46,976 nt of DNA from Macrostomum lignano (taxonomy: Eukaryota): positions 1 to 46,976 of the forward strand of contig NIVC01003544.1 of assembly GCA_002269645.1 (NCBI GenBank), read 5' to 3'. This document shows, piece by piece, positions 7,457 to 38,938 of this stretch. The first letter of the stretch is position 1. Each line of letters opens with the position of its first letter. A program made the position numbers and the translations under genes. Below the pieces are notes generated by a model. The model ran no database searches. It was not told the DNA's origin and was given only the letters and a program-made list of their open reading frames with translations.

Positions 7457-7480
7457 CATTCCGTCACTTCAGTCATTCCG

Positions 7481-13400: not shown

Positions 13401-13432
13401 CCCTTAGTCTCTCCATCTTTCCCTCAGTCACT
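7481..13432. repeat. 20-bp minisatellite (CTCAGTCACTGCATCTTTCC)n, ~6 kb, interrupted by unique DNA at about 8410-8833
   Basis: Directly visible, with many recurrent variant units. Confidence 0.97.
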
Positions 13433-16638: not shown

Positions 16639-16937
16639 CAACAACAACAACAACAAAAACAACAACAACAACAACAACGACAACAAAAACAACAAAAACA
16701 ACAAAAACAACAAAAACAACAACAACAACAACAAAAAACAACAACAACAACAACAACGACAACAAAAACAACAAAAACAACAAAAACAACAAAAACAACA
16801 AAAACAACAAAAAAAACAACAACAACAACAAAAAACAACGAAAAAAACAACAACAACAAAAACAACAACAAAAACAACAAAAACAACAACAAAAACAACA
16901 AAAACAACAACAAAAACAACAGTAACAGCAACAACAA
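16639..16937. repeat. (AAC)n/(AAAAAC)n microsatellite, probable LINE tail
   Basis: Directly visible. Confidence 0.95.
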
Positions 16938-16940
16938 TGA

Positions 16941-17309
16941 AGCCATGACCGCTCCCGGGACACCTACGGAACCACCGGCCCAAACTGCCGCACGGAGTGC
17001 ATGTGGCCTGCGTATGAGAGAGCTGAGTACACCAAATTCAGAGTAGGACACAACACAGGTCTTAGAGCCTATGCTAACCGGCTGGGCCTGGACGACTCCG
17101 ATACCTGCACACTCTGTATGAGGGCACCGGAGACTAACACCCACGTGGTTCTGGAGTGCGACAAGATAGAAAAGGCTCGCCGCATCCTCGGTATCACGTG
17201 CCTCGCAGACCTGTGCAGCAGCCCCGACGCTGGTCGAAAACTCTGGGCGGAGTTTAAGGAAAGAGTTAGAGAGGTGGATGGAGCGACTTCCCAGTTTGCT
17301 AAAAACTAA
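16941..17309 (+). mobile_element. 3' end of an I/ingi-like non-LTR retrotransposon ORF2 with CCHC zinc knuckle (5'-truncated)
   Basis: KFRVGHNTGLRAYANRLGLDDSDTCTLCMRAPETNTHVVLEC matches the R.GH..L...L.R.G.....C..C....ET..H...C C-terminal motif of LINE ORF2. It is followed by an (AAAACT)/(AAC)n tail. Confidence 0.8.
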
Positions 17310-17412: not shown

Positions 17413-17512
17413 TTCATGGCTATCGTCTAATAAATGGATGGAGCCGCTACAGCAGCGACACGGATTAGCATTTTTATGGGGTCAGCCTCAGGATTGGTAT
17501 ATCCTCACCAAT

Positions 17513-17632
17513 AGTCAAAACCGCCACCCCAGACCCGTGTGCCTGAGCGAGAGCTGGAAAACCTTGCATCATTGCAGTGTAGTGAGCTGAAGTCAATCGC
17601 ACTGCCTATTCTCTGGGGTGGCGGTTTTGACT
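17513..17632. mobile_element. 120-bp MITE-like module with perfect 21-bp terminal inverted repeats
   Basis: AGTCAAAACCGCCACCCCAGA (17513-17533) and TCTGGGGTGGCGGTTTTGACT (17612-17632). No clear TSD. Confidence 0.6.
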
Positions 17633-18121
17633 GCTGCCAAGTGTGCATTTGGGGTCAGGTACGATCACCCTCAGTGAAGCTCAAGAATATCAAATTTTAA
17701 CTGCAGCCATTGAAGCATGCCAAGTGATCCACAGCGTAACAAATGCAATTTCATTGTGAACAGCGCAGCCATTTTCAATGCCAAAATGAGGAGGGGCAGG
17801 CGCTTGGCGTACGATTCAAGCCAATGAAGGCCAACCCCGAAAGTCTGGCTGTGTACATTCCTGAGAATGAGTCAGTTTATAGGGCCACTGTACACCCTGT
17901 GTGACTGCGGGTCTGCGAGTAGGTGGATGGGCATGACTGGAGAAGCAACATGATTGGTTGGGCAGGCCTCAGACAGAGTACAAGTTGAATCGAGGGTGCT
18001 GTCGTGAGTGCTTCTAAATATTGATCGCCTAAAAGTTGACACCAGCTGCAGACACTGTGGTATAATATAGCGGCAACAAGCCTGCCCGCCTGCTCTGAGC
18101 TTGGCGCCCGAGTCTCACACC

Positions 18122-21100
18122 ATGGCTGAGCAGCTCACCTGGAGAAGCGAGAGAGAGCGGCTGGAGGCCAAAATCACAGCCAGCCTGAAGGCAACGCTGC
18201 ACTGTGTGGACCCAAGGCCGGATGTGTCTAAAAAAACCTACGATAAAATTCTTCGACGTTTGAGGCGCAGCGACACTAACAACTTCATCCAGGGGGAGCG
18301 CTCGCATTTTCAGAATAGAATTGTGAGGGCAATCAACAGGACTCGATATTATCACGAAACTGATAAAGAATTGCCACAGCTTTGTCTTAGCAATTCTCTG
18401 AGCATTGTGGCCAAGTACGTGTTTCACTACATGGAACGCCGCACTGCATATCGAGACCGCTTGAGCTCGATGCCGTGCAGCACTGTTCTGATTCACCAAA
18501 ACCTATCGGACACCAGCTGCACCCACCATTTTACTGCCGAAGTCTACGGCTGCCTGGTCTACTGCACGCCCCGCATCGACAGCATCATCGGCATCTACCG
18601 CCGCGTGTCTGAAGTTCCCGAAGAGGCAGTGAGGTTCTGGTCTAGACGGTGAGTTCTTAAACAAAAGCTTTTCTTTCGTTACCCAATAAAATGTGCATTC
18701 ATGTTTTGTCCAACCAGAGGCACACAACAAGCGGGATTTCATTTGAATGCTAAACAAAAAAGGCGTTTGTGAGATTTTCATTTTTCACATTTTAGCACGA
18801 AAAATGGTAAATATTTCTCCTTCCAAGATTCCAGTACGCATATGAGACTGCTATGTGTCTGATAGGAGATTCAACCTACAAGTTCCTTTAACTTGATGAA
18901 GAAACAGGGAGATTCAGTAGAGAGCAGGCGCGTAGCCTGAAATTTTCTTGAGAGGGGAAATAGGCCGCCCCTAGGGAGAGTCGAAATTTATTTGGGGTGG
19001 ATTGGCCGCCCCTAGGGAGAGTCGAAATTTATTTGGGGTGGATTGGCCGCCCCTAGGGAGAGTCGAAATTTATTTGGGGTGGATTGGCCGCCCCTAGGGA
19101 GAGTCGAAATTTATTTGGGGTGGATTGGCCGCCCCTAGGGAGAGTCGAAATTTATTTGGGGTGGATTGGCCGCCCCTAGGGAGAGAAATTTTATACGAAG
19201 GGGGGTTGGCCATCCGTAAAAAACCTGATTTCTTAAAAACTTTTTTAGGCTGTTCGGGGGATACATCACCACATCTTCTGTTGCCTACGCCCCTTTTAGA
19301 AAAACAGGGTGACTAATAGCGAGATGGGGAGGGCATTAGAGAGACAGGGAGAGCATTAGAGAGACAAGGGTGAGCATTAGAGAGACGGGGAGAGCATTAG
19401 AGAGACAGGGAGAGCATTAGAGAGACTAAGGTGAGCATTAGAGAGACAAGGTGAGCATCAGAGAGACAGGGTGGCTATTAGCGAGACAGGGAGAGCATTA
19501 GAGAGACAGGGAGAGCATTAGACAGACAGGGTGGCTATTAGAGAGACAGGGAGAGCATTAGAGAGACAGGGAGAGCATTAGAGAGACAGGGAGAGCATTA
19601 GAGAGATAGGGAGAGCATTAGAGAGACAGGGAGAGCATTAGACAGACAGGGTGGCTATTAGAGAGACAGGGAGAGCATTAGAGAGACAGGGAGAGCATTA
19701 GAGAGACAGGGAGAGCATTAGAGAGACAGGGAGAGCATTAGAGAGACAGGGAGAGCATTAGAGAGACAGGGAGAGCATTAGAGAGACAGGGAGAGCATTA
19801 GAGAGACTGGGAGAGCATTAGACAGACAGGGTGGCTATTAGCGAGATAGGGAGAGTATTAGAGAGACAGGGAGAGCATTAGAGAGACAGGGAGAGCATTA
19901 GACAGACAGGGTGGCTATTAGAGAGACAGGGTGGCTATTAGAGAGACAGGGAGAGCATTAGAGAGATAGGGAGAGCATTAGACAGACAGGGTGGCTATTA
20001 GAGAGACAGGGAGAGCATTAGAGAGATAGGGAGAGCATTAGACAGACAGGGTGGCTATTAGAGAGACAGGGAGAGCATTAGAGAGACAGGGAGAGCATTA
20101 GAGAGACAAAGGAGAGCATTAGAGACAGGGAGAGCATTAGAAAGACAGGGAGAGCATTAGAGAGACAGGGAGAGCATTAGAGAGATAGGGAGAGTATTAG
20201 AGAGACCGGGAGAGCATTAGAGAGACAGGGAGAGCATTAGAGAGACAGGGTGGCTATTAGAGAGACAGGGAGAGCATTAGAGAGACAGGGAGAGCATTAG
20301 AGACAGGGAGAGCATTAGAAAGACAGGGAGAGCATTAGAGAGACAGGGAGAGCATTAGAGAGACAGGGAGAGCATTAGACAGACAGGGTGGCTATTAGAG
20401 AGACAGGGAGAGCATTAGCGAGATAGGGAGAGCATTAGAGAGACAGGGTGGCTTTTAGCGAGATAGGGAGAGCATTTGAGAGACAGGGAGAGCATTAGAG
20501 AGACAGGGAGAGCATTAGAGAGACAGGGAGAGCATTAGAGAGACAGGGAGAGCATTAGACAGACAGGGTGGCTATTAGCGAGACAGGGAGAGCATTAGAG
20601 AGACAGGGAGAGCATTAGAGAGACAGGGAGAGCATTAGAGAGATAGGGAGAGCATTAGACAGACAGGGTGGCTATTAGCGAGACCGGGAGAGCATTAGAG
20701 AGACAGGGAGAGCATTAGAGAGACAGGGAGAGCATTAGACAGACAGGGTGGCTATTAGCGAGATAGGGAGAGCATTAGAGAGACAGGGAGAGCATTAGAG
20801 AGACAGGGAGAGCATTAGAGAGACAGGGAGAGCATTAGAGAGACAGGGAGAGCGTTAGAGAGACAGGGAGAGCATTAGAGAGACAGGGAGAGCATTAGAG
20901 AGACAGGGAGAGCATTAGAGAGACAGGGAGAGCATTAGAGAGACAGGGAGAGCATTAGACAGACAGGGTGGCTATTAGCGAGATAGGGAGAGCATTAGAG
21001 AGACAGGGAGAGCATTAGACAGACAGGGAGAGCATTAGAGAGACAGGGAGAGCAATAGAGAGACAGGGAGAGCATTAGACAGACAGGGAGAGCATTAGAG

Positions 21101-24100
21101 AGACAGGGAGAGCATTAGACAGACAGGTAGAGCATTAGACAGACAGGGTGGCTATTAGCGAGACAGGGAGAGCATTAGAGAGACAGGGAGAGCATTAGAC
21201 AGACAGGGAGAGCATTAGACAGACAGGGAGAGCATTAGAGAGACAGGGAGAGCATTAGACAGACAGCGTTGCAATTAGCGAGACAGGAAGAGCATTAGAG
21301 AGACAGGGAGAGCATTAGAGAGACAGGGAGAGCATTAGAGAGACAGGGAGAGTATTAGAGAGACAGGGAGAGCATTAGACAGACAGGGTGGCTATTAGCG
21401 AGACAGGGAGAGCATTAGACAGACAGGGTGGCTATTAGAGAGACAGGGAGAGCATTAGACAGACAGGGTGGCTATTAGAGAGACAGGGAGAGCATTAGAG
21501 AGACAGGGAGAGCATTAGACAGACAGGGTGGCTATTAGAGAGACAGGGTGGCTATTAGAGAGACAGGGAGAGCATTAGACAGACAGGGTGGCTATTAGAG
21601 AGACAGGGTGGCTATTAGAGAGACAGGGAGGGCATTAGAGAGACAGGGAGAGCATTAGAGAGACAGGGAGAGCATTAGAGAGACAGGGAGAGCATTAGAG
21701 AGACAGGGAGAGCATTAGAGAGACAGGGAGAGCATTAGAGAGACAGGGAGAGCATTAGAGAGACAGGGAGAGCATTAGAGAGACAGGGAGAGCATTAGAC
21801 AGACAGGGTGGCTATTAGCGAGACAGGGAGAGCATTAGACAGACAGGGTGGCTATTAGCGAGATAGGGAGAGCATTAGACAGACAGGGTGACTATTAGCG
21901 AGATAGACACTGTGTTTTGTGTTTTGTTTTAGTCATGCATTAATCGTAGTGCGCACTTTTTGATGAATTGGTTTCATACGAAAATACTCTTTATGCATTA
22001 TGCTATGTTTTGAAAAGACTGTCGATTGTAACAATTCTACTGGGTAGGATGCAGTCTTCATGGCAAAATGCATTGGCCAGATTGGGAATTTTCAGGGTTT
22101 TAGTACTAAGCTCCCAATGTCTCCTCACCTAATTCCACCGTCTTGACTTTCAAAGTCAAAAAATGAAGCGAGTGTGTTTCGTTCAAATCAGCTCTAAAAT
22201 GCCCCAACAGAGACAACTGTAATTTTGCCGGAACTCGCTGGTACCATTTTATAAAAACGCATTAAATTTCTAGCTTGGAAGATGCTTTCTCGTAGGATGC
22301 AAACAGTGCTAGAGAACTAAATTAGACTATCCGGCCAATGGATAAATAATCAGCGGTCCCAGTGCGTGACAACGATTGTCTGGCGAGCGCCGCTAGGCGA
22401 GCCATAGACAAATCGTTGTCACGTGCTGCGACCGCTGATTCTTTGCATTGTTTTTCTGTTTGACGATCCTACAGATATTGCATTGTTTAGCAATTTGACG
22501 ATCATTATTCACATTTTTAATGCAGGACAATCCATTACTACAAACAATGCATTGTCTGTAGGATCGTCAAACAGAAAAACAATGCAAAGAATCAGTGGTC
22601 CAGTGCGTGACAACGATTGTCTGGCGAGCGCCGGTTATTTATCCATTGCTTGCAGTAATGGATTGTTCTGCATTAAAAATGTGAATAATGATCGTCACAT
22701 TGCTAGACAATGCATTTCCTTCTATCTCAGTTGTCTATGCAAAAAATGCAGCTTTAAGCAAAATGAAAAGTTAAATCTTTCGCAGAAAACCGGAGCAACA
22801 GGAGGCGAAACCGCGGAGGCGGATGGCAGCTGCGGGTCAGCCAGACCTGCAGAAAGGCTTCTACGAACAGCTGACCAGCGAGAATTGCACGTCGGTGGGC
22901 GTCAGCATCAGCCTTCTGCTGCCGCTTGAAGCAAAAGGCGAAGGCCGGATCTGTGTGGTGGCGCTCTTCGATGAAAATATTGACAAGCCCGATGCCATGA
23001 ATAACTGGGCTCAGCAGACGATAAACACCAGGGCCTATGCGCCATTTCTGACACTTTCTGCGGCGAGAATTTTCATGACTGTGGGCACGTCATTGCAGAA
23101 AGAAGTTGCTACTGTTTATAACACCAGAGTAATTCAGCCGCAAAAGATTGCCAAACGTCTGAGCGACGAGTCGAAACGTTCGTGGCATCCGGACAGAGCA
23201 AACAACGCAATCTGTTCAGTATTGACTGCTGTAAAGGACCTCTCTTTGCGCGCCAAGTGTCTTCCTGACTTTGCCTTCGAGCTCCATTGCATTGTTTGTG
23301 ACATAAAATCCACTCGTAAAGACATCAAGGAATTAATGAATTCCATAGAGCAAGACTGGGACCTCCTCATTCAAGGGCTGAGCAAATCTAGCAGCCAGAG
23401 CGTCATGAACATAGTTGCATCGCTGAAGGCGCTACGAACAAGATGGATCGACTACGAAACAGTAAAAGAGAAATGCAAGCTGTTTCTGACTTACGCAGAC
23501 CGAGCGAAAGCTGGTGAAGACGTCCTGGCGGCTTTTATTCAAGAACCGGAATTGGACCTGACAACTAAGGGTGAAGCCACGAGTCTAAGCATGGAGCTGA
23601 AGCCGCACGCAGATACTCTTGAGAAGATTTCGAAAACAAGCAAAGAGAGTCTCATGATTCGTCAGAAATTCCCGCCGAAAAGCAGAAGCCCGGACAGCGT
23701 TGTTCTATCCTTGACCAAAAAACTGGAGAAGTTCGTAAATGACTCAATTCCGTTGCACGAACAGCTTGGAAAGCTAAGTGATTTCCGTCATCAGACCAAG
23801 AGGCGGCGCGATCGCTCTGAGCAACTAATGCAGTACTATAATGCAATGTGCTCCAAGGAGATGAGCACGGAAATCCTAGAGTCAAAGAACATCTCAACTG
23901 CTCTACTCGAACAGGCTTACGTAGTGTTTGAGCTTTCCGACAGGTTGCCTGCAATTCCTTTGGATCCAGTTCCGAGTTCCGAGGGATCGAAATTGCTGGA
24001 AGTTGCACAGGCAGTTGGCAGAATCTCCGAGGAGCAGATGCGCCTATTTGAGCCCGGCTTTCCGTTAAGTGAGCGAGTGCCAGCTCAATGGACCGAGTGC

Positions 24101-24637
24101 GCTAGCAGTAGAACGCTCAGGTGCGTGTTAGTTGGTACACACAGCATAGTGGAATCCAAGGAGCTGCTGAGTGACCTCAAAGACAGGAGCTCAAAGAAGA
24201 GTCTGAATGAGTTTCGGGATGCGAATTTGGTGAAGGAATTACCGAACGCCCTGGAAATCAACCAGCAGCTGCTGAACCTGCGCGATGAGATAACCAAGTT
24301 GGCCGAGTCCCTGGTGGGGCCAGACAGTGCTGACAAGATACTGCGAGCTGCCTTCGCAAGGCTGCGCGGCCTAACACCGAATTTTATGAACTTGGTCGCT
24401 ACCAAACCAGTGCACAATGAATTCCGCTCGCTAATCAAGGCGTTGGATGCCTATGTGAGATACGTGTTGAATCGGACTGCAAAGATGATGCAGGACGGGA
24501 AAAATTGGGATTCGATCGAAAAGGAGCTTATCGAGCTGACAGAGTCACTGCAGGCTAACGCACTGGTGCTGTTTTGCTGCTCTGAAACTTTTAAACGACA
24601 CTGCCAGTACGATTATTACATCCGCATTGGTTTCTGA
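18122..24637 (+). CDS. Two-exon uncharacterised ~792-aa protein, paralogue A (exons 18122-18648 and 22786-24637)
   Basis: Kozak CACCATGG. The apparent stop of the short ORF lies in a donor, AGACG|GTGAGT (phase 2). Acceptor TCTTTCGCAG|A lies 37 nt before the ATG of the 604-aa ORF, so CG+A=Arg and the frame continues KPEQQEAKPRRRM. Total CDS 2379 nt. No signal peptide or TM segment seen. Confidence 0.85.
18963..19185. repeat. 41-bp tandem repeat x5.4, present only in copy A intron
   Basis: Unit GGCCGCCCCTAGGGAGAGTCGAAATTTATTTGGGGTGGATT at 18963, 19004, 19045, 19086, 19127 and 19168 (partial). Confidence 0.93.
19315..21905. repeat. 20-bp minisatellite (ATTAGAGAGACAGGGAGAGC)n in the intron of paralogue A
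   Basis: Directly visible, with variant ATTAGACAGACAGGGTGGCT. Confidence 0.97.
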
Positions 24638-25487
24638 GTGGCCTTCGCGATCACCTGCTGACTCAGTCCACAATGAGGACAAACTGTTGCATATTTTCTC
24701 GGTACGACGTTTTTCATTTCAATTTTTTACCCCTCTGCTGTACCTCCTCAGATCCTGCAGTTTTGTTCGTTCAGTTTTATCGAAATCGAAGCTGCGTCAA
24801 AATTGCTATTTGAGTTCTGAGAGAAGCTTGCGAATCCGGCGTTTAGAAGGTGTTGAATTTGAATTTGACGAACGTCTTTATTATTAAAAACGAATTATTT
24901 GTCTCTAGCATTGCTTTCTACTCGTGTTTTGATTTTAATTCATTTTGCACTGTCCGTATAGCGCCAAGAAATCAGATTTTGTGCAAAGGGCATTTTGAAG
25001 CTTCATATTAAAACTTTCACACTGAAGGAACGGGAATGGTGGTACGTTTTGATGAAATAGTTTAATACTGAACCGAATTTCGGAGTACAAGAACCATCGT
25101 TGATTATTAGTGTCGTTCAGAATTCCCTGCGCACAAATTTAATATGGGAGATTACGTTTTATGCAACGACACTACGCTCGTAATAAAGAATATACAAACA
25201 ACTCCAACAAGATTGTTTTTTATTTCCATGCGATTTTTCCTTTTTTATTCCTAAAATATTGATAACGGATAACCGATTATTAAATTGTTGCCAATTCAAT
25301 AGGCCTTCACTCAGTTGTTGTTTGCATCAAATAAACATTCGATTTTCGTTTTCGATATTCCGTAGATTTCCGTTTTAAACTTGCGCCTTTCTACATTTTT
25401 GGGCATTCTATTACAGCAGTCAAAACCAGCGATCTCAGCTCATTTAGTCAGTCCTATTGCGCCTCACTTATGGTCGCTGCAAGTCCC

Positions 25488-26038
25488 TCTGCTAAGCTGA
25501 CACCAAGACTCTCAGCCCTCTGCTAAGCTGCCACCAAGACTCTCAGCCCTCTGCTAAGCTGCCACCAAGACTCTCAGCCCTCTGCTAAGCTGCCATCAAG
25601 ACTCTCAGCCCTCTGTTAAGCTGCCACCAAGACTCTCAGCCCTCTGCTAAGCTCCCATCAAGACTCTCAGCCCTCTGCTAAGCTCCCACCAAGACTCTCA
25701 GCCCTCTGCTAAGCTCCCATCAAGACTCTCAGCCCTCTGCTAAGCTCCCATCAAGACTCTCAGCCCTCTGCTAAGCTGCCACCAAGACTCTCAGCCCTCT
25801 GCTAAGCTGCCATCAAGACTCTCAGCCCTCTGCTAAGCTCCCATCAAGACTCTCAGGCCTCTGCTAAGCTGCCACCAAGACTCTCAGCCCTCTGCTAAGC
25901 TGCCATCAAGACTCTCAGGCCTCTGCTAAGCTCCCATCAAGACTCTCAGCCCTCTGCTAAGCTTCCATCAAGACTCTCAGCCCTCTGCTAAGCTGCCATC
26001 AAGACTCTCAGCCCTCTGCTAAGCTTCCATCAAGACTC
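25488..26038. repeat. 31-bp tandem repeat (AAGACTCTCAGCCCTCTGCTAAGCTGCCACC)n; remnant resumes at 27128-27205
   Basis: Period of 31 (25505, 25536...). A related array lies at 38366-38938. Confidence 0.95.
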
Positions 26039-26039
26039 G

Positions 26040-27120
26040 TGTAATTATACTTTTACCCAGACGCAATAACAAAATATTTTGGCCATTATTCCACAGTTTT
26101 GATGTGTACCATAGACATTTGGATTGAAAAAATCCATCGCTCAGTATTTTTGTTAATAAATACAGAACAACAAGAAGTAAATGAACAAAAAGGAAAATCA
26201 TTAAAACTAAAGTACCAGCTACACGAAAAGAGTTAATAATAAATGTCACAGTTAGTGCAGTTTATCAGTTTGTAGTCAAAATTTGACAATGTGAAAATCA
26301 ATTTGTCACCCAAAAGTGAAACATACACAGTTCTCAAAGCCGCAGTTTCCAAAGATGCTCGACACTCTAGCCTGATGATTTGGCACTGCAAAAGGAGTTG
26401 GTCTATGTTGAATGTTTTCTATGAAAGAGAAATACAGGTGCTCAAGTATAGTTGCCGAACTTACCATTTGAAAGATGCACGTCTTGGTTAAGTTGGCTTG
26501 CGGCTGATGAGCTTCGTCTGATGAGCTTCTTTGGTACCGCAGTATCCAAGCTGGGATTCTTTGGGACTGCCGGCTGCTCGACTGAATCGATTGGCCGCTT
26601 TGAGGCATCGCTTATAGCCGTCGAGGCGTTGAAGACTGCATGGTCGCGTTTTCTTCCTAGGTAGCGCCGCACGGTTCGTTCAGTCGTCGACAGGAAGATT
26701 TTTTCAATTAATAAGCGCGGCTGTTTGACGAGATGCACCAGCCATGGTTGTTTGACAAGACAAATAGCTTTTTCTCGCACTACTCGCTTTCCTGATTTCT
26801 TGCAAGACGCAAGCAAAATCAGCACTCATCACAGTGTTGTCTATGGTCAAACTAAGCCACACAACTCAGTCGTCTATGGGTAAAACATCTCTTAAAACAG
26901 CCAATTGAAGCATGATAAAAAGTGTGGAATAATGACAGCGACAAAAGTGTGGAATAATGGCCGCAAAAGTGTGGAATAATGGCCGCAAAAGTGTGGAATA
27001 ATGGCCGCAAAAGTGTGGAATAATGGCCGCAAAAGTGTGGAATAATGACTGAGCGCTGAGTGAAAGTATAAATACAATGCACTTGTATAGTATGCAACTT
27101 CGTTGAATACTATACAATCT
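26040..27120 (+). mobile_element. Non-autonomous Helentron/HINE-like element inserted in the 31-bp array
   Basis: Imperfect subterminal IRs TGTAATTATACTTTTACCCAG (26040-26060) and CTGAGTGAAAGTATAAATACA (27056-27076). A 16-bp-stem hairpin lies at 27083-27117, with an internal 22-bp tandem array. The host array resumes afterwards. Confidence 0.55.
26917..27047. repeat. 22-bp tandem repeat (AAAAGTGTGGAATAATGGCCGC), ~5-6 copies
   Basis: Directly visible. Confidence 0.92.
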
Positions 27121-27265
27121 GCCATTGAGCCCTCTGCTAAGCTCCCATCAAGATTCATCAAGCCCTCTGCTAAGCTCCCATCATGACTCTCAGCCCTCTT
27201 CTAAGCCTTCATCTCTTGGGTTTAATTTTGTGGTGCTGCCCGTCGAGCTGCTGCGCCGGACCATT

Positions 27266-28290
27266 GTAGGGACTATTATAGGGATTATTATAGAGATTAT
27301 TATAGGGATTACTATGGGGATTATTATAGGGATTACTATAGGTATTATTATAGGGATTATTATAGGGATTATTATAGGGATTATTATAGGGATTACTATA
27401 GGGATTATTATAGGGATTATTATAGGGATTATTATAGGGATTATTATAGGGATTATTATAGGGATTACTATAGGGATTACTATAGGAATTACTATAGGGA
27501 TTACTATAGGGATTATTATAGGTATTGTTATAGGGATTATTATAGGGATTAATATAGGGATTATTATAGGTATTGTTATAGGGATTATTATAGGGATTAT
27601 TATAGGGATTAATATAGGGATTATTATTGGGATTATTATAGGGATTACTATAGGGATTACTATAGGAATTACTATAGGGATTACTATAGGGATTATTATA
27701 GGTATTGTTATAGGGATTATTATAGGGATTAATATAGGGATTATTATAGGTATTGTTATAGGGATTATTATAGGGATTACTATAGGGCTTATTATAGGGA
27801 TTATTAAAGGGATTATTATAGGGATTATTATAGGGATTACTATAGGGATTAATATGGGGCTTATTATAGGGATTATAATAGGGATATTATAGGGATTATT
27901 ATAGGGATTACTATAGGGATTAATATGGGGCTTATTATAGGGATTATAATAGGGATATTATAGGGATTATTATAGGGATTATTATAGGGATTATTATTGG
28001 GATTATTATAGGGATTATTATAGGGATTACTATAGGGATTACTATAGGGATTAATATAGGGCTTGTTATGGGGATTATTATAGGGATTATTATAGGGATT
28101 ACTATAGGGCTTATTATAGGGATTACTATAGGGCTTATTATAGGGATTATTATAGGGATTATTATAGGGATTATTATAGGGATTATTATAGGGATTATTA
28201 TAGGGCTTATTATAGGGATTACTATAGGGATTATTATAGGGATTATTATAGGGATTACTATAAGGATTAATAAAGGGCTTATTATAGGGA
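27266..28290. repeat. 12-bp minisatellite (ATAGGGATTATT)n
   Basis: Directly visible. It is the source of the IIGI-repeat ORFs. Confidence 0.97.
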
Positions 28291-29320
28291 TTATTATAGG
28301 GATTATTATAGTATTTGCGGTCCGGACGAGGTGCCCATCAAGGCGCTGCGCATCCAATGTGGCCACTGAGGTGGCCAGAGTGATGAATCGCGTGCTCTTC
28401 GGTGAGGAGGCACCTAAAAAGTGGACCACGGCGCACATTGTCGCAGTTCCTAGGAAGCCGGGCACCACGAGCCTTGAGGAGCATCGAGGTATCTGCCTTC
28501 AATCCTGCGCTGCGAAGTTGTTCAACCGGTTGCTGCTATCGCTGTTGCAGCCCGTGCTGGATACCTGCATCCTGAGCAGAACGGCTTCCGGCCCCATCGC
28601 GGCACTGTGACGCGGATCCTGGCTCTTCGGCGAGTCATCGAGGAAGCACGGACACGCCAGTCGATCCTGATTGTTATCTTCATAGATTTCAAGAAGGAAT
28701 TCGACTCGGTCGTCAGGTCTGTGCTCCTAAAGGTGCTCCGAGCGTAAAACGTGTCAGAGCAGCTGATTTCCGCCATCATGGCGATGTACCATGATACGAA
28801 AGCTGCTGTTTTAACACCGGATGGCCTATCGGAATTTTTTGAGACATCCTCCGGAGTGCTTCAAGGAGATACGCTTTTGCGCCGTTCCTGTTCGTCCTGG
28901 TGCTTGACTGGGTGTTTCGGACCGCTCTTCTTACCAACGACGACGGCTTTCTGTTGCGGCGACGCGTGGGTTGACGCCAACCGGAGAGGTGGCTCAGCGT
29001 GCTTGGCTACGCCGACGACCTCGCCCTACTGTCCTCAACTGTCGAGGGCGCCGAGCGACAACTGGACAAGCCAGTTGCTGTTGCGGCGACTGTCGGCCTG
29101 GTGGTCAACACGCAGAAGACCGTCGTGCTCTGCGTGCCGGGCGATATCGAGGCAGCGATTTTGTGCCGAGGCGCTGATGGACAGGCGACAGAGCTTCCGC
29201 GTAGTCAGCAGTTCGTCTACCTCGGCGGTCTGGTTCCCGGCGTCCGCGAGGATTTTCGGCGTCGCCGCGGGCTTGCCTGGGCTGCCTTTCGTTCTGTGAG
29301 GGCAGCCCTGCAGTTACCTG
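28291..29320 (+). pseudogene. Decayed RTE-type non-LTR retrotransposon reverse transcriptase fragment
   Basis: Motifs W....IVAVPRK..HRGICL, EQNGFRPHRG, FIDFKKEFDSV, GVLQGDTL(A)PFLF, LGYADDLALL, GLVVNTQKT, FVYLG. Frameshifts near 28560 and 28875; in-frame stops near 28744 and 28972. Confidence 0.92.
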
Positions 29321-29335
29321 GCCTCGGACTGCATT

Positions 29336-29433
29336 AGTAGTAGTAGACTCAGTTAGTCTACTACTTTAGCTACTACTACTACTCTACTCTACTCTACTAC
29401 TACTCTGCTACTTTACTCTCTACTACTCTACTT
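29336..29433. repeat. TAG/CTA-type low-complexity tract
   Basis: Directly visible. Confidence 0.8.
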
Positions 29434-29819
29434 CGGGTTCTCATTCAATTGTGACACATTTAGCAGCACCGATTCGGGTTCTCATTCAATTGTGACACAT
29501 TTAGCAGCACCGATTCGGGTTCTCATTCAATTGTGACACATTTAGCAGCACCGATTCGGGTTCTCATTCAATTGTGACACATTTAGCAGCACCGATTCGG
29601 GTTCTCATTCAATTGTGACACATTTAGCAGCACCGATTCGGGTTCTCATTCAATTGTGACACATTTAGCAGCACCGATTCGGGTTCTCATTCAATTGTGA
29701 CACATTTAGCAGCACCGATTCGGGTTCCCATTCAATTGTGACACATTTAGCAGCACCGATTCGGGTTCTCATTCAATTGTGACACATTTAGCAGCACCGA
29801 TTCGGGTGCCCATTCAATT
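29434..29819. repeat. 41-bp tandem repeat x~9.4 (CGGGTTCTCATTCAATTGTGACACATTTAGCAGCACCGATT), no spacers
   Basis: Units at 29434 + 41n through 29803. Confidence 0.96.
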
Positions 29820-30081
29820 CTCAAGTCTGCACACAGTGAGTCGGGGGTTAGCTGATCTTGATGGGGGACTGATTTCTTGCTATTATATCATTTAGACACA
29901 TTAGAATTGAACAGGCTGTAAATTATACGGATGGGAACAAAATCTGTATAATCATTGCAATTGCACTATCCCGGTACTTCTTAGAAATGCTTTTCGGCAT
30001 TCAAGAAATCATAAAATGCTTTTATCAGCTGCGCATGTCCATTTTACTCGCTCTGAAGCAACGCATTCACTTCAACTTCAA

Positions 30082-30700
<619 letters not shown>

Positions 30701-30732
30701 TGTCAACAATAGCTGAGAATATACTCAGCAAT

Positions 30733-30845
30733 AGTCAAAACCGCCACCCGTGTGCCTGAGCGAGAGCAGGAAAGCCTTGCGTCATTGAAGTGCAGTGTGC
30801 TGAAGTCAAACGCTCTGCCAATTCTCTGGGGTGGCGGTTTCGACT
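30733..30845. mobile_element. Copy B of the MITE-like inverted-repeat module (left IR partly deleted)
   Basis: AGTCAAAACCGCCACCC ... GGGTGGCGGTTTCGACT. Confidence 0.55.
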
Positions 30846-31170
30846 GCTGCCGAGTGTACATTTGGGGTCGGGCACCAATTAGCCATTTTCAATTCCAAAA
30901 TGAGGAGGGGCGCTTGGCGTACGATTCAAACCAATGAGGGCCAACCCCGAAAGTCTGGCTGTGTACATTCCTGAGAATGAGTAAATGAGTGAGCAACATG
31001 ATTGGTTGGGCAGGCCTCAGACAGAGTACAAGTTGAATCGAGGGTGCTGTCGTGAGTGCTTCTAAATATTGATCGAATAAAAGTTGACACCAGCTGCAGA
31101 CACTGTGGTATATTATAGCGGCAAACAGGCCTGCCCGCCTGTTCTGAGCTTGGCGCCCGAGTCTCACACC

Positions 31171-34100
31171 ATGGCTGAGCAGCGCACCTCGAGAAGTGAA
31201 AGAGAGCGGCTAGCGGCCAAAATCAGAGTCAGCCTGAAGGCAACGCTGCACTGTCTGGACCCAAGGCCGGATGTGTCTGAGGAAGCCTACGATAAAATTC
31301 TTCGACGTTTGAGGCACAGCGACACTAACAACTTCATCCAGCACGAGCGTTTGCGTCTTCAGGAGAGAGTTGGCTGGGAAATCAACAGGACTCGATATTA
31401 TCACAAAACTGATAAAGAATTGCCACAGCTTTGTCTTAGCAATTCTCTGAGCCTTGAGGCCAAGAAAGTGTTTCACTACATGGAACGCCGCACTGCATAT
31501 CGAGACCGCTTGAGCTCGATGCCGCGCTGCACGGTTCTGATTCAACAAAACAAATCAGACACCAGCTGCACCCACTATTTTACTGCCCAGGCCTACGGCT
31601 GCCTGGTCTACTGCACGCCCCGCGTCAAAAATTTCGACTACGATGTGTCTAGGTATCCCGAAGAGGCAGTGAGGTTCTGGTCTAGACGGTGAGTTCTTAA
31701 CCAAAAGCTTTTCTTTCGTTACCGAATAAAATGCGCATTCATGTTTTGTCCAACCAGAGGCACACAACAAGCGGGATTTTTTTGAAGACTAAATAAAAAA
31801 GCATTTGCAAGATTTTCATTTTTTACATTTTAGCACGAAAAATGGTCAATATTTCACCTTCCAAGATTCCAGTACGCATATGAGACTGCTATGAGTCTGA
31901 TAGGAGATTCAACCTACAAGTTCCTTTAACTTGTTGAAGAGACAAGGAGATTCAGTAGAGATCAGGCGCGTAGTCTGAAATTTTCTCGAGGGGGGGGGGT
32001 TGGCCATCCGTAAAGAAAAACCTGATTTCTCAAAAACTTTTTAGGCTGTTCGGGGGATACATCGCCACATTCTCCGCTCCTACGCCCGTGTTAGAGAATC
32101 AGGGTGACTATTATCGAGATGGGAAGAGCATTGGAGAGACAGGGAGAGCATTAGAGAGACGGGGAGAGCATTAGAGAGACAGGCTGAGCATTAGAGAGAC
32201 AAAGGTGAGCATTAGAGAGACAGGGTGGCTATTAGCGAGATAGGGAGATTATTAGAGAGACAGGGAGAGCATTAGAGAGACAAAGGTGAGCATTAGAGAG
32301 ACAGGGTGGCTATTAGCGAGATAGGGAGAGTATTAGAGAGACAGGAAGAGCATTAGAGAGACAGGGAGAGCATTAGAGAAACAGGGAGAGCATTAGACAG
32401 ACAGGGTGGCTATTAGCGAGATAGGGACAGTATTAGAGAGACAGGGAGAGCATTAGACAGACAGGGTGGCTATTAGCGAGATAGGGAGAGCATTAGAGAG
32501 ACAGGGAGAGCATTAGACAGACAGGGTGGCTATTAGAGAGACAGGGAGAGCATTAGAGAGACAGGGAGAGCATTAGAGAGACAGGGAGAGCATTAGAGAG
32601 ACGGGGAGAGCATTAGAGAGACAGGAAGAGCATTAGAGAGACAGGAAGAGCATTAGAGAGACAGGGTGGCTATTAGAGAGACAGGGAGAGCATTAGAGAG
32701 ACAGGGAGAGCATTAGAGAGACAGGGAGAGCATTAGAGAGACGGGGAGAGCATTAGAGAGACAGGGAGAGCATTAGAGAGACAGGGAGAGCATTAGAGAG
32801 GCAGGGAGAGCATTAGACAGACAGGGTGGCTATTAGAGAGACAGGGAGAGCATTAGAGAGACAGGGAGAGCATTAGAGAGACAGGGAGAGCATTAGAGAG
32901 ACAGGAAGAGCATTAGAGAGACAGGGAGAGCATTAGAGAGACAGGAAGAGCATTAGAGAGACAGGGAGAGCATTAGACAGACAGGGTGGCTATTAGCGAG
33001 ATAGGGAGAGTATTAGAGAGACGGGAGAGCATTAGAGAGACAGGGAGAGCATTAGAGAGACAGGGAGGGCATTAGAGAGACGGGGAGAGCATTAGAGAGA
33101 CAGGGAGAGCATTAGAGAGACGGGGAGAGCATTAGACAGACAGGGTGGCTATTAGAGAGACAGGGAGAGCATTAGAGAGACAGGGAGGGCATTAGAGAGA
33201 CAGGGAGAGCATTAGAGAGACAGGGAGAGCATTAGAGAGACAGGGAGAGCATTAGAGAGACAGGGAGAGCATTAGAGAGACAGGGAGAGCATTAGAGAGA
33301 CAGGGAGAGCATTAGAGAGACAGGGAGAGCATTAGAGAGACAGGGAGAGCATTAGAGAGACAGGGAGAGCATTAGAGAGACAGGGAGAGCATTAGAGAGA
33401 CAGGGAGAGCATTAGAGAGACAGGGAGAGCATTAGAGAGACAGGGAGAGCATTAGAGAGACAGGGAGAGCATTAGAGAGACAGGAAGAGCATTAGAGAGA
33501 CAGGGAGAGCATTAGAGAGACAGGGAGAGCATTAGAGAGACAGGGAGAGCATTAGAGAGACAGGGAGAGCATTAGACAGACAGGGTGACTATTAGCGAGA
33601 TAGACACTGTGTTTTGTCTTTTGTTTTAGTCATGCATTAATCGTAGTGCGCACTTTTTGATGAATCGGTTTCATACGAAAATACTCTTTATGCATTATGC
33701 TATGTTTTGAAAAGACTGTCGATTGTAACAATTCTACTGGGTAGGATGCAGGTCTTCATGGCAAAATGCATTGGCCAGATTGGGAATTTTCAGGGTTTTA
33801 GTACTAAGCTCCCAATGTCTCCTCACCTAATTCCACCGTCTTGACATTCCAAGTCAAAAAATGAAGCGAGTGTGTTTCGTTCAAATCAGCTCAAAAATGC
33901 CCCAACAAGACAACTGTAATATTGCCGGAACTCGCTGGTACCATTTTATAAAAACGCATTAAAATTGTGGCTTGGAAGATGCTTTCTCGTAGGATGCAAA
34001 CAGTGCTAGAGAACTGGAGACTTCCTATCCGGCCAATGCATTTCCTTCTATTTCAATTGTCCATGCAAAACATTAGAGACAGGGAGAGCATTAGAGAGAC

Positions 34101-37100
34101 AAAGGTGAGCATTAGAGAGACGGGGAGAGCATTAGAGAGACGGGGAGAGCATTAGAGAGACAAAGGTGAGCATTAGAGAGACGGGGAGAGCATTAGAGAG
34201 ACGGGGAGAGCATTAGAGAGACAGTGAGAGCATTAGAGAGACGGGGAGAGCATTAGACAGACAGTGAGAGCATTAGAGAGACAAAGGTGAGCATTAGAGA
34301 GACGGGGAGAGCATTAGAGAGACAAAGGTGAGCATTAGAGAGACGGGGAGAGCATTAGAGAGACGGGGAGAGCATTAGAGAGACAGGGAGAGCATTAGCG
34401 AGACGGGGAGAGCATTAGCGAGACGGGGAGAGCATTAGAGAGACAGTGAGAGCATTAGAGAGACAAAGGTGAGCATTAGAGAGACGGGGAGTGCATTAGA
34501 GAGACAAAGGTGAGCATTAGAGAGACGGGGAGAGCATTAGAGAGACGGGGAGAGCATTAGAGAGACAGGGAGAGCATTAGCGAGACGGGGAGAGCATTAG
34601 CGAGACGGGGAGAGCATTAGAGAGACAGGGAGAGCATTAGAGAGACAAAGGTGAGCATTAGAGAGACGGGGAGAGCATTAGAGAGACAATTGTGAGCATT
34701 AGAGAGACGGGGAGAGCATTAGAGAGACAAAGGTGAGCATTAGAGAGACGGGGAGAGCATTAGAGAGACAAAGGTGTGAGCATTAGAGAGACGGGGAGAG
34801 CATTAGAGAGACAAAGGTGAGCATTAGAGAGACGGGGAGAGCATTAGAGAGACGGGGAGAGCATTAGAGAGACGGGGGGAGCATTAGAGAGACAAAGGTG
34901 AGCATTAGAGAGACGGGGAGAGCATTAGAGAGACAAAGGTGAGCATTAGCGAGCCAAGGCAGAGCTGTCATTTTGCTATAGTTGATAAGTTAATTAAACC
35001 GCCCTCACATCACTGGCGGATGAAAGAAATACACTCCCGATATAGGACGAATTTTTGGCATAAAAACACGTACACCAAAATATCCAGCTACGAATGGCAT
35101 TGTCACGGGACATCAATTTATATCTTAAATACGAGTACAAGTTTGGAAAAAAAATTGTAAGTTTTCATAGCAGTAGCATGTCGCTTAAAATTAGCGAAGT
35201 TTCATGAAATCTTTGAAAGCTTAAAATTTCAGCAGGAAGTGAAGAAAAGTTGGGCGTGGCGGGGGTTCTGATAAAAGTAGGTAGGCATTATGAGATATGC
35301 TAACATACCGTTTTAACAAACACTAAGAAACAAAAAAGCTAAAAAAACATTATTAACTCCACTGGTTTTGCATTAAACTTGTGGCTTGGAAGATGCTTTC
35401 TCGTAGGATGCAAACAGTGCTAGAGAACTAAATTAGACTATCCAGCCAATGGATAAATAATCAGCGGTCCCAGTGCGTGACAACGATTGTCTGGCGAGCG
35501 CCGGTTATTTATCCATTGCTTGCAGTAATGGATTGTTCTGCATTAAAAATGTGAATAATGATCGTCAAATTGCTAGACAATGCATTTCCTTCTATCTCAG
35601 TTGTCTATGCAAAAAATGCAGCTTTAAGCAAAATGAAAAGTTAAATCTTTCGCAGAGAACCAGAGCAACAGGAGGCCCAACCGCGGAGGCGGATGGCAGC
35701 TGCGGGTCAGCCAGACCTGCAGAAAGGCTTCTACGAACAGCTGACCAGCGAGAATTGCACGTCGGTGGGCGTCAGCATCAGCCTTCTGCTGCCGCTTGAA
35801 GCAAATGGCGATGGCCGGATCTGTGTGGTGGCGCTCTTCGATGAAAATATTGACAAGCCCGATGCCATGAATAACTGGGCTCAGCAGACGATAAACACCA
35901 GGGCCTATGCGCCATTTCTGACACTTTCTGCGGCGAGAATTTTCGCAGCTGTGGGCAGGTCATTGCGGAACGAAATTGCTACTGTTTATAACATCAGAGT
36001 GAATCAGCCGCAAGAGATTGCCAAACGCCTGAGCGACGAGTCGAAACGTTCGTGGCATCCGGACAGAGCAAACAACGCAATCTGTTCAGTATTGACTGCT
36101 GTAAAGGACCTCTCTTTGCGCGCCAAGTGTCTTCCTGACTTCGCCTTCGAGCTCCATTGCATTGTTTGTGACATAAAATCCACTCGTAAAAACATCAAGG
36201 AATTAATGAATTCCATAGAGCAAGACTGGGACCTCCTCATTCAAGGGCTGAGCAAATCTAGCAGCCAGAGCGTCGTGAACATAGTTGCATCGCTGAAGGC
36301 GCTACGAACACGATGGATCGACTACGAAACAGTAAAAGAGAAATGCAAGCTGTTGCTGACTTACGCAGACCGAGCGAAAGCTGGTGAAGACGTCCTGGCG
36401 GCTTTTATTCAAGAACCGGAATTGGACCTGACAACTAAGGGTGAAGCCACGAGTCTAAGCATGGAGCTGAAGCCGCACGCAGATACTCTTGAGAAGATTT
36501 CGAAAACAAGCAAAGAGAGTCTCATAATTCGTCAAATATTCCCGCCGAAAAACAGAAGCCCGGACAGCGTTGTTCTATCCTTGACCAAAAAACTGGAGAA
36601 GTTCGTAAATGACTCAATTCCGTTGCACGAACAGCTTGGAAAGCTAAGTGATTTCCGTCATCGGACCAAGAGGCGGCGCGATCGCTCTGAGCAACTAATG
36701 CAGTACTATAATGCAATGTGCTCCAAGGAGATGAGCACGGAAATCCTAGAGTCAAAGAACATCTCAACTGCTCTACTCGAACAGGCTTACGTAGTGTTTG
36801 AGCTTTCCAACAAGTTCGCTGAAGTTCAGTTAGGTCGAGTTCCGAGTTTTCTGAGGTCGAGCTTGCTGGAAATTGCACAGGCAGTTGGCAGAATCTCCGA
36901 GGAGCAGATGCGCCTATTTGAGCCCGGCTTTCCGTTAAGTGAGCGAGTGCCAGCTCAATGGACCGAGTGCGCTAGCAGTAGAACACTCTGGTTCGTGTTA
37001 GTTGGTACACACAGCATAGTGGAATCCAAGGAGCTGCTGAGTGACCTCAAAGACAGGAGCTCAAAGAAGAGTCTGAAAATGTTTCGGAAAGCGAATTTGG

Positions 37101-37501
37101 TGAAGGAATTACCGAACGCCCTGGAAATCGACGAGCAGCTGCTGAACCTGCGCAATGAGATAACCGAGTTGGCCAAGCCCCTGGTGGGGCGAGGCCATGC
37201 AGACAAGCTACTGCGAGCTGCCTTCACAAATCTGCGCGGCCTAATGCTGGATTTAGTGAACGTGATCGCTACCAAACCAGTGCACGCTGAATTCAATTCG
37301 CTATTCAATGCGTTGGATGCCTATGCGAGAAATGTGTTGAATCAGACTGCAGAGATGGTGCAGGACGAGAAGAATTGGGATTCGATCGAAAAGGAGCTTA
37401 TCGAGCTGACAGAGTCACTGCATGCTCGCGCAGTGGAGCTGTTTTGCTACTCTGAGACTTTCAAACGACCCTGCCAGGGTTACATTCGCATTGGTTTCTG
37501 A
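31171..37501 (+). CDS. Two-exon uncharacterised ~787-aa protein, paralogue B (exons 31171-31688 and 35656-37501)
   Basis: Same Kozak ATG, same phase-2 donor AGACG|GTGAGT and same acceptor TCTTTCGCAG|A 37 nt before the ATG at 35693 (EPEQQEAQPRRRM). Total CDS 2364 nt. Confidence 0.85.
32105..33603. repeat. 20-bp minisatellite (ATTAGAGAGACAGGGAGAGC)n in the intron of paralogue B, block 1
   Basis: Same unit as 19315-21905. Confidence 0.97.
34070..34950. repeat. 20-bp minisatellite, block 2 (variants ...GACGGGGAGAGC and 21-bp ...GACAAAGGTGAGC), copy B only
   Basis: Directly visible. Confidence 0.95.
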
Positions 37502-38365
37502 GTGGCCTTCGCGATCACCTGCTGACTCAGTCCATAATGAGGACAAACTGTTGCATATTTTCTCAGTACGACGCTTTTCATTTCACTTTTTACCCTTCTG
37601 CTGCATCTCCTCAGATCCTGCAGCTTTGTTCGTTCAGTTTTATCGAAATCAAAGCTGCGTCAAAATTTCCATTTGAGTTCTGAGAGAAGCTTGCGAATCC
37701 TGCGTTTAGAAGGTGTTGAAAACTTTGGCGCAGATTTGAATTTGCTCAATTGGTTTTCAGGTGATTGGTGAATTAATGAAAAAACTAATGAATTACAATA
37801 TCTCAAGCTCCGCTTTCTACTTGTATATTCACTTTAATTCAGTTTGCACTGTCCATATAGCGCCATGAAATCAAGATTTGTGCAACGGGCATTTTGAAGC
37901 TTCTTAGAAACTTTAATTTTTGTAACAGGCGTAAAGTATCCGAATTTTTTTGAGTTCATGAGCTGTGGTCTTTGTTAAGCTATTGTCAATGTTCATATAA
38001 TTAGTGTCGTTCAGAATGCCCTGCGCAAAGTTGATATTTTATGCAACGAGACTTCGTTTTGTGCTAATTTGAGAAAAACAATAGATCGATCCCATTTTTT
38101 ATTTCCATGTGACTTTCGCGTTTTTATTCCTAAAATATTTAATTGATTTTATAACCAATTATCCAGTAGTTGCCAATTTAATAGGCTTTCAGTCAGTTAT
38201 TGTTCTAGCAAATAAACATTCGATATTCGTTGCATTTCGTAGATTTTCGTTTCAAATTTGCGGCTTTTCCCACGTTTTTTGGGCATTCTATTACAGCAGT
38301 CAAAACCAGCAATATGTCACCTCATTCAGTCAGTCCTATTTCTCCTGACTTGGTCGCTGCAAGTC

Positions 38366-38938
38366 CCTCTGCTAAGCTCCCATCAAGACTATCAGCCCTC
38401 TGCTAAGCTCCCATCAAGACTCTCAGCCCTCTGCTAAGCTCCCATCAAGACTCAGCCCTTCTGCTAAGCTCCCATCAAGACTCAATCTTCTGCTAAGCTC
38501 CCATCAAGACTCAGCCCTCTGCTAAGCTCCCATCAAGACTCAATCTTCTGCTAAGCTCCCATCAAGACTCAATCTTCTGCTAAGCTCCCATCAAGACTCA
38601 ATCTTCTGCTAAGCTCCCATCAAGACTCAATCTTCTGCTAAGCTCCCATCAAGACTCAATCTTCTGCTAAGCTCTCAATCTTCTGCTAAGCTCCAATCAA
38701 GACTCAATCTTCTGCTAAGCTCCCATCAAGACTCATCGAGCCCTCTGCTAAGCTCCCATCAAGACTCATCGAGCCCTCTGCTAAGCTCCCATCAAGACTC
38801 ATCGAGCCCTCTGCTAAGCTCCCATCAAGACTCAGCCCTCTGCTAAGCTCCCATCAAGACTCAGCCCTCTGCTAAGCTCCCATCAAGACTCAATCTTCTG
38901 CTAAGCTCCCATCAAGACTCAATCTTCTGCTAAGCTTC
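38366..38938. repeat. 29-33-bp tandem array related to 25488-26038
   Basis: Units such as AAGACTCAATCTTCTGCTAAGCTCCCATC and AAGACTCATCGAGCCCTCTGCTAAGCTCCCATC. Confidence 0.93.

Follow-up and report, generated by a model that had tools for sequence, protein, structure and literature searches.

The morpheus/NPIP genes of the great apes, reportedly described by Johnson et al. in 2001, are said to lie in segmental duplications whose exons are more divergent than their introns and to show Ka/Ks above 1. A pattern of this kind was found on contig NIVC01003544.1 of the flatworm Macrostomum lignano, which carries two tandem paralogues of a two-exon gene, here called copies A and B. The window of this analysis is the entire 46,976-bp contig, assigned to the Mlig_3_7 assembly by protein-cluster look-up. 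Like morpheus/NPIP, the M. lignano gene is lineage-restricted and duplicated, has no recognisable domains, and its exons diverge faster while the reading frames are preserved. It has no sequence similarity to morpheus/NPIP, comes from a flatworm, is present as two copies per haplotype rather than dispersed, and its ratio of nonsynonymous to synonymous divergence (dN/dS, omega) is modest (1.2-1.6). Among known systems, morpheus/NPIP would be the closest pattern. The locus is a tandem duplicate that evolves fast, is restricted to its lineage and probably undergoes concerted evolution, and a new kind of system is not indicated. The signal of adaptive divergence is real but moderate.

Tandem duplicates with concerted evolution and conversion-resistant islands include RHD/RHCE, the opsins and the KIR/MHC paralogues. 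The M. lignano pair resembles them in its mosaic of near-identical and divergent segments, in having alleles with short tracts in the state of the other paralogue, and in its lower silent divergence where the copies are homogenised. It belongs to an unrelated family, and the direction of exchange is unpolarised without an outgroup. Patch-wise positive selection is known from cytoplasmic restriction factors such as primate TRIM5alpha. Here too the protein is intracellular by prediction, and short patches carry most of the amino acid change between close relatives. Unlike TRIM5alpha, it has no RING, B-box or coiled-coil-SPRY arrangement and no known pathogen link. By analogy, the protein may work like a patch-wise selected recognition protein. 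Toxin-antidote elements act by parent-of-origin killing and rescue and usually consist of two unrelated linked genes, unlike the two paralogues found here.

In M. lignano 35% of the protein clusters are species-specific, as are 48% of the germline-enriched ones (Grudniewska et al. 2018, PMC5816591), and the orphan status of the gene is therefore ordinary in this genome. Reproduction-related Macrostomum genes are reported to evolve fast (Brand et al. 2021, PMC8662610). The gene shares its organism with these fast-evolving Macrostomum-restricted genes and is likewise M. lignano-specific and without homologues. It is set beside such genes, which are often reproduction-related, by its orphan status.

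Gene structure and divergent islands

The paralogues lie in a direct duplication of approximately 8.5 kb. In self-BLAST alignments copy A of the duplicon (17499-26038, plus strand) comprises the proximal 5' flank, gene A, the 3' flank and a downstream 31-nt satellite, and copy B occupies 30719-38941 on the same strand. Homology extends from 17499/30719 to this 31/29-nt satellite (CCCTCTGCTAAGCTGCCATCAAGACTCTCAG), which is located 3' of each paralogue (25485-26038 and 38368-38941), is approximately 83-85% identical between copies and, as judged from the alignments, is the 3' boundary of the duplicon. Each unit contains one two-exon gene. Gene A (18122-18648 + 22786-24637) encodes 792 aa and gene B (31171-31688 + 35656-37501) encodes 787 aa, both on the plus strand. 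In both genes the start codon lies in an ACCATGG context, the intron has a GTGAGT donor and a CAG acceptor, and the frame is intact. Exon 1 of gene A (18122-18648) comprises codons 1-175 plus 2 bases and is 11.8% divergent from exon 1 of gene B. It is followed by a GT..AG intron (18649-22785), which contains a 41-nt repeat (18963-19185) and 2.6 kb of a 20-nt satellite (19327-21903), and by exon 2 (22786-24637), comprising codons 176-792 plus the stop. Gene B consists of exon 1 (31171-31688), an intron (31689-35655) and exon 2 plus the stop (35656-37501), with the same structure as the public spliced 787-aa model P0002. In both paralogues the intron of approximately 4 kb is mostly a 20-nt satellite (GGGAGAGCATTAGAGAGACA) which differs between A and B in copy number and layout. 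In gene B this satellite extends from 32125 to 34965 and is split by a unique stretch (33590-34041); its second block (34075-34965) has a 41/182-nt higher-order periodicity.

On the window contig, copy B is annotated as BOX15_Mlig030318g2 and copy A as a 604-aa product without a name. Model P0002 (BOX15_Mlig030318g3), from another contig, is spliced exactly as in copy B, and the same splice is found in its cluster-mate P0006 (Mlig030318g2) on the window contig. The GenBank model of copy A starts at an internal Met (604 aa), and the ML2/UniProt set includes a 792-aa entry. Model P0001 (604 aa) equals A exon 2 from Met189; its identity was reported as 100%, yet one residue differs (D-G-K vs D-E-K). 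P0004, the cluster-mate of P0001 on the window contig, likewise equals A exon 2 from Met189. UniProt model P0003 joins a zf-RVT open reading frame (ORF) to gene A, omits part of exon 2 and is probably an annotation artefact. For this assembly, the GenBank gene set was derived from genome-guided RNA-seq assemblies from which low-expression and repeat-overlapping transcripts were removed (PMC5730564). As the annotation was guided by RNA-seq and the B model is spliced identically, transcription and splicing of at least copy B are indirectly supported. No mention of the gene IDs, and no expression or phenotype data for them, was found in a full-text literature search and two supplement sets.

The same A-B tandem is present on contigs NIVC01003545.1 and NIVC01000578.1, and B exon 2 is additionally found at the ends of NIVC01004269.1 and NIVC01002296.1. 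These extra copies fit the redundancy already described for the DV1 assembly. Gene models and intact ORFs were found for A on three independent contigs and for B on two. Alleles of A differ by 0.2-0.6%, and the window allele of B (B_w) differs from B_2 by 0.6%. The contig-end copies of B exon 2 (L004 1-1876; L005 about 400-2253) contain many 1-bp indels, which are most likely long-read consensus errors rather than signs of pseudogenes. GenBank holds these copies merely as 246-aa and 85-aa partial proteins, and they served here for substitution states only. Allele B_3 (L003 20092-20609) lies on NIVC01000578.1, a 605-kb contig. Its exon 1 is 3.9% divergent from that of window B, with 15 residue changes, compared to 1.9% for the flanks (p = 0.027); there is no protein record from the B_3 copy, and the comparison covers exon 1 and its flanks. 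Assembly error was rejected as the source of the divergent patches because they recur on independent contigs.

The coding sequences (CDS) of A and B differ at 168 nt, with 114 amino-acid-changing codons and 20 synonymous-only codons. Nei-Gojobori (NG86) counting classed 135.8 of these differences as nonsynonymous and 32.2 (19%) as synonymous, the synonymous share of sites being 22.5%. The differences were spread over the three codon positions as 65/53/50 (p = 0.32 against uniform). The amino acid changes are clustered, with a variance per 20 codons of 9.1 compared to 2.4 in permutations (P<1e-4). The divergent segments that were delimited are all on the plus strand. In exon 1 these are codons 58-71 (18293-18334; B: 31342-31383), the second half of which is A-like in haplotype B_3, and codons 151-166 (18572-18619; B: 31621-31659), which include a 9-nt in-frame indel. 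In exon 2 they are codons 273-298 (23075-23152; B: 35945-36022), where 12 of 78 nt differ, codons 561-583 (23939-24007; B: 36809-36877), where 20 of 69 nt differ, and a C-terminal variable region of codons 631-792 (24149-24634; B: 37019-37498), where 55 of 480 nt differ. Several codons have three states across haplotypes, such as R/W/G at codon 69 and I/V/G at codon 152. A and B probably differ in local conformation at the 561-583 island, since this segment is Pro-rich in A, with 4 Pro compared to a single Pro in B.

The observations in the first-pass annotation of this DNA were confirmed, with a change of emphasis. Both copies are intact, with open frames in A and B. The patch at 23939-24004 vs 36809-36874 has 14 of 22 residues changed and one synonymous-only codon (L568), and the patches GERSHFQNRIVRA/HERLRLQERVGWE, IDSIIGIYRRVSEV/VKNFDYDVSRY and MTVGTSLQKEV/AAVGRSLRNEI are all present, as is the variable C-terminus. 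The unique intron DNA, said to differ at about 8 sites, has approximately 7 substitutions and 2 one-base indels. The description of the patches as almost purely nonsynonymous was too strong for the gene as a whole: approximately 32 of the 168 differences are synonymous, the codon positions are evenly affected and, with nonsynonymous sites making up approximately 77% of the total, replacement codons would predominate under neutrality as well. The exon-2 scaffold is near-identical as described (1.64% divergent), but it appears recently homogenised rather than constrained because its divergence equals the rate of the adjacent intron (1.9%).

Divergence at silent and non-coding sites is uneven across the duplicon, from 1.5-2.1% in the 3' intron and 1.64% in central exon 2 to 5.4-6.4% at the gene ends. 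Synonymous changes at amino-acid-conserved codons were 2.7 times as frequent in the variable regions (13/280) as in the scaffold (7/393; p = 0.038). The neutral background is itself a mosaic, as silent changes track local non-coding divergence. A-state tracts are present in alleles of B. Adjoining the 561-583 island, at 23897-23929 (B: 36767-36799, plus strand), B_w and B_5 are identical to A, and B_2 and B_4 have 8 extra differences (5 amino acid changes, 0 synonymous). This segment may be either a short A-to-B conversion tract or a newly arisen patch, and is unpolarised without an outgroup. In exon 1 of B_3 there are 20 differences from B_w; at 8 of these B_3 has the A state, and half of the 58-71 patch is among them. 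The simplest reading of the A-state tracts would be short-tract conversion between A and B, with ancestral states or new mutation as alternatives. These patterns make it probable that the mosaic arose in part by gene conversion.

On the sense strand the coding differences are asymmetric, with 72 A<->G and 25 C<->T, compared to 15 and 17 in the non-coding duplicon (Fisher p = 0.008). The excess of A<->G could reflect purine-rich codons with favoured K/E/R/D/N/G exchanges or a transcript-strand mutational bias. Other mutational origins of the patches were considered. Compensated frameshifts were rejected, as the codon alignment showed dense substitutions and no local indels beyond two in-frame gaps. 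Templated mutation from nearby sequence was rejected, as no match of at least 13 nt to any patch was found elsewhere in the window or in the fetched loci. Adenine mutagenesis like that of diversity-generating retroelements was also rejected, as substitutions affect every base and form a symmetric matrix (A>G 36, G>A 36). On the minus strand, ORFs of 117-118 aa are open in exon 2 of both paralogues (23652-24008 and 24085-24438 in A; 36522-36878 and 36955-37308 in B), and one of them begins inside the 561-583 island. They probably arise incidentally from the long ORF on the sense strand.

Selection, gene conversion and competing explanations

By NG86, dN was 0.078 and dS 0.063, an omega of 1.24; this and the other dN/dS tests are comparisons of two paralogues with clustered multi-nucleotide differences. 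Pairwise maximum likelihood under the GY94-F3x4 codon model gave a kappa of 3.1 and an omega of 1.64 (likelihood ratio test against omega = 1, p = 0.014). The same model gave an omega of 2.77 for the C-terminal 162 codons (p = 0.008). Values for exon 1 (1.42), for the central scaffold minus its two patches (0.63), for codons 273-298 (4.3) and for codons 561-583 (2.7) were not significant. Neutral evolution was simulated with the clustering kept, stops forbidden and the transition bias of the non-coding DNA (32 transitions : 24 transversions, kappa = 2.7). The simulated NG86 omega had a median of 0.77, and the probability of a value at least as high as the observed 1.24 was 0.0013.

The proportion of nonsynonymous differences (pN) was 7.4%, approximately 1.9 times the alignable non-coding divergence of the duplicon (4.1%, 61/1493; Fisher p = 4.5e-5). 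A refined non-coding count gave 56/1428, or 3.9%. The non-coding differences were scattered rather than patchy, and the unique parts of the intron were 1.5-6.4% divergent. Exon 1 differed at 61/518 nt compared to 29/484 in its immediate flanks (p = 0.0013), and the C-terminus at 55/480 nt compared to 12/218 in the 3' untranslated region (p = 0.0125). Against the adjacent intron (12/625, 1.9%), divergence was higher at codons 273-298 (15%, p = 1.4e-6) and at codons 561-583 (29%, p = 5e-14). Inside the islands 4-fold sites are 4.8% divergent (6/126), and dN there is approximately 14% by arithmetic from the NG86 window counts. The islands being merely ancient DNA was rejected as a sole explanation because their 4-fold sites are so little divergent.

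The frame was preserved throughout. The simulated probability of no stop arising after 168 random substitutions was 0.004. The CDS has 2 indels, both in frame, compared to 16.6 expected at the non-coding rate (P = 1e-5). Leu positions were variable at 5 of 88 compared to 109 of the 699 remaining residues (p = 0.01), which hints that a helical core is retained. The first-pass annotation had suggested diversifying selection on interaction surfaces, as in intracellular immune receptors, allorecognition factors or genetic-conflict genes. Selection is partly supported by the omega above 1, the pN above non-coding divergence and the kept frame; the signal is modest and conversion probably contributes to the pattern.

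We lean slightly towards a tandem duplicate with concerted evolution in which islands of a functional protein have undergone accelerated, probably adaptive, amino acid divergence. On this reading A and B are tandem copies of a transcribed two-exon gene that is restricted to Macrostomum, and its product would be a soluble, basic, mostly alpha-helical protein of approximately 790 aa. Short-tract conversion between A and B would limit divergence to approximately 2% in the 3' half of the intron and in the 5' two thirds of exon 2, and the gene ends would remain at approximately 5% silent or non-coding divergence. The islands would be exon 1 in its entirety, codons 273-298 and 561-583, and the C-terminal 160 or so codons. 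Replacement changes in them would accumulate approximately 2-3 times faster than silent or flanking non-coding changes, with a much greater excess in the two central islands, and stops and frameshifts would be excluded while the islands diverge. Positive selection would push or keep paralogue-specific segments apart, and conversion would erode the differences in some haplotypes. The islands may be partner-binding surfaces. The best guess at a cellular role is a helical adaptor or binding protein, the two copies of which would recognise different or fast-changing partners, possibly related to the germline or to conflict.

Several points weigh against adaptive divergence in the islands. Omega exceeds 1 by a modest margin and varies with the model (1.24 by NG86), and the same neutral simulation at kappa = 1 gives P = 0.08. 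The even distribution over codon positions (65/53/50) is as expected under neutrality. The island boundaries were drawn post hoc, after inspection of the data. Of the 168 differences, 58 are adjacent to another difference, and standard codon models can overestimate omega where changes come from multi-nucleotide events or from imported tracts. The ratio of nonsynonymous to synonymous differences within A and within B is the same as that between A and B (about 4:1), so that a McDonald-Kreitman-type contrast shows no excess of fixed replacements. Conversion and new mutation are inseparable without an outgroup.

Three other explanations were weighed. The pair may be a young duplicate, with approximately 2-4% neutral divergence, that underwent repeated adaptive substitution on interaction surfaces, with conversion unimportant. 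This would account for non-coding divergence that is uniformly low and scattered across the duplicon, for patches that lie within the CDS, for an exon 1 approximately twice as divergent as its flanks, for the omega above 1 and for the three-state codons across haplotypes (69, 152). However, the 561-583 island would then need approximately 20 fixed substitutions in 69 nt, compared to approximately 1.6-2% around it, and a local omega above 10, which is extreme. The A-state tracts in the B patches and the low central silent divergence are most simply explained by conversion, there is no recognition domain, and the surface test on the predicted protein gave a weak trend (p = 0.11). Selection with no important role for conversion is considered unlikely. 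Relaxed constraint appears a little less probable again. Here a young protein would be selected only against truncation, with omega about 1, and conversion would make the patchiness. In segments that had already diverged, mismatches would block further conversion, and these segments would then drift. Even codon positions, an NG86 omega near 1, equal nonsynonymous to synonymous ratios within and between paralogues and a scaffold diverging at the intron rate are all consistent with it. The far 3' flank contains stretches that are unalignable and rich in indels, a possible non-coding counterpart of the islands, and the many species-specific protein clusters of M. lignano (35%, PMC5816591) also favour it. 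A pN of 1.9 times alignable non-coding divergence (p = 4.5e-5) and of 2-3 times silent divergence inside the same islands argues against relaxed constraint, as do an omega significantly above the null when the observed transition bias is used and the sparing of Leu positions.

The remaining explanation, import by gene conversion from a third divergent copy such as an unannotated paralogue, a retrocopy or a pseudogene, is very improbable. It draws on differences that are dense, multi-nucleotide and exon-confined, as from an intronless donor, and on the long interspersed nuclear element (LINE) reverse-transcriptase fragments that adjoin both copies. However, two exhaustive protein searches returned no third protein cluster, the window and the fetched loci, which were the sequences covered by the DNA-level search, contain no template, and a pseudogene donor would give an omega of about 1 rather than above it.

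A wider proposal is that the pair are founders of an undescribed Macrostomum-specific intracellular recognition or conflict family, with diversifying surface patches and variants shuffled by conversion. This is doubtful. Candidates of this kind would be restriction factors against transposons or viruses, factors in germline or sperm-egg conflict, or components of selfish elements. If adaptive divergence with concerted evolution is the true explanation, the locus would be a clean two-copy case of exons outpacing their own introns while conversion homogenises the remainder. Work in a flatworm tractable to transgenesis and RNAi could then reveal the role of a species-specific protein and the evolution of paralogue specificity. 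If the divergence is not adaptive, the gene would be one among roughly ten thousand weakly constrained M. lignano-specific protein clusters, and a caution that counts of synonymous-only codons overstate selection.

Protein features and candidate classes

No homologues outside M. lignano were found. The 604-aa exon-2 ORF matched three clusters among 5.8e9 sequences, and phmmer with the 787-aa protein against 1.84e9 representatives returned the same M. lignano proteins only. Searches of Pfam-A with hmmscan covered P0005, P0002 and the window copies, for which the products of exon 1 and exon 2 were searched separately. No domain was predicted (E<=1, E<=10), and there was only sub-threshold noise (VMAP-M1, T4_UVSX_C). 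P0003 and P0005 carry the UniProt label 'DHC_N1 domain-containing protein', which was rejected as there was no DHC_N1 match at E<=10. A PDB sequence search returned no relative. The earlier suggestion of an orphan family was borne out, with only M. lignano proteins found and no Pfam or PDB match. The gene has the features of a lineage-specific duplicate: no outside homologues, coding divergence greater than non-coding divergence and a preserved frame.

The absence of a signal peptide or transmembrane segment, also proposed earlier, agrees with a charged N-terminus and a highest 19-residue Kyte-Doolittle mean of 1.21. The protein is basic (net +15), with the basic runs PRRR and KRRRDR, and has conserved Cys/His in exon 1. 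It is predicted to be soluble and mostly alpha-helical, with a C-terminus resembling a four-helix bundle. AlphaFold2 without homologues gave poor models, with a predicted local distance difference test (pLDDT) score of 35.8 over the full length and of 55.5 over the C-terminal 168 residues. Foldseek against the PDB matched generic helical bundles only (best E=0.028, TM 0.30). In a helical-face test there was a weak trend for variable C-terminal residues to lie on the polar side of helices (p = 0.11).

Known classes of fast-evolving protein were compared with the gene and rejected. An NLR-type immune receptor was rejected as there was no NB-ARC/NACHT, LRR or any other Pfam domain and no PDB relative. 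A TRIM/SPRY restriction factor was rejected as there were no RING, B-box, coiled-coil or PRY/SPRY Pfam matches, and an allorecognition receptor of the Alr or FuHC type as there was no signal peptide, Ig domain or transmembrane segment. A protein encoded by a transposable element was rejected as no reverse transcriptase, transposase or integrase domain was found in the CDS and the recorded copies are this locus and its haplotype or homeologue copies. The exclusion of repeat-overlapping transcripts from the annotation also counts against such an origin, and the LINE fragments lie outside the gene.

Neighbouring features of the contig

Upstream of copy A a zf-RVT-like ORF was predicted at 17001-17309 (Pfam E=7.8e-4, under the curated cut-off). 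Upstream of copy B putative reverse-transcriptase blocks with a YADD box, recognised by eye, are located at 28068-29337; the ORFs with this box had no reverse-transcriptase Pfam match. As read from these ORFs, non-LTR retrotransposon remnants are present upstream of each paralogue and outside the genes. They lie outside the duplicon, as the fragments before A and before B are not homologous.

Long tandem arrays dominate the contig. A 12-nt array (TGAGATAGAGAG, 171 copies) occupies the contig end at 1-2035, and a 20-nt satellite (TCAGTCACTGCATCTTTCCC) extends for 6.4 kb at 7469-13851. The 20-mer of the latter is unrelated to the intronic 20-mer (best match 11/20). Another 12-nt array (ATTATAGGGATT), (TAG)206 and (CAA)101 are located at 27263-28311, 30082-30700 and 16639-16937, respectively. 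Two different 41-nt tandem repeats were found at 18963-19185 (5.4 copies) and 29432-29819 (9.5 copies), the first of which is inside the intron of copy A only. The units of both are 98-100% identical, so these arrays are very young.

An Rfam search gave no matches. Downstream of copy B two ORFs on the plus strand (40977-42428 and 42553-42876) matched the DEG/ENaC amiloride-sensitive sodium channel family (Pfam ASC, E=4e-13 and 2e-11). The second corresponds to the C-terminal end of the ASC profile and is read as the second transmembrane segment, and the two ORFs are probably two exons of a single channel gene. A ZZ-type zinc-finger ORF, a gene fragment, was predicted at 4267-4674 on the plus strand (Pfam E=2e-11), and a 509-aa Gln-rich ORF with no Pfam match is located at 5700-7229 on the minus strand. 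Both lie in a GC-rich region (about 58-62%).

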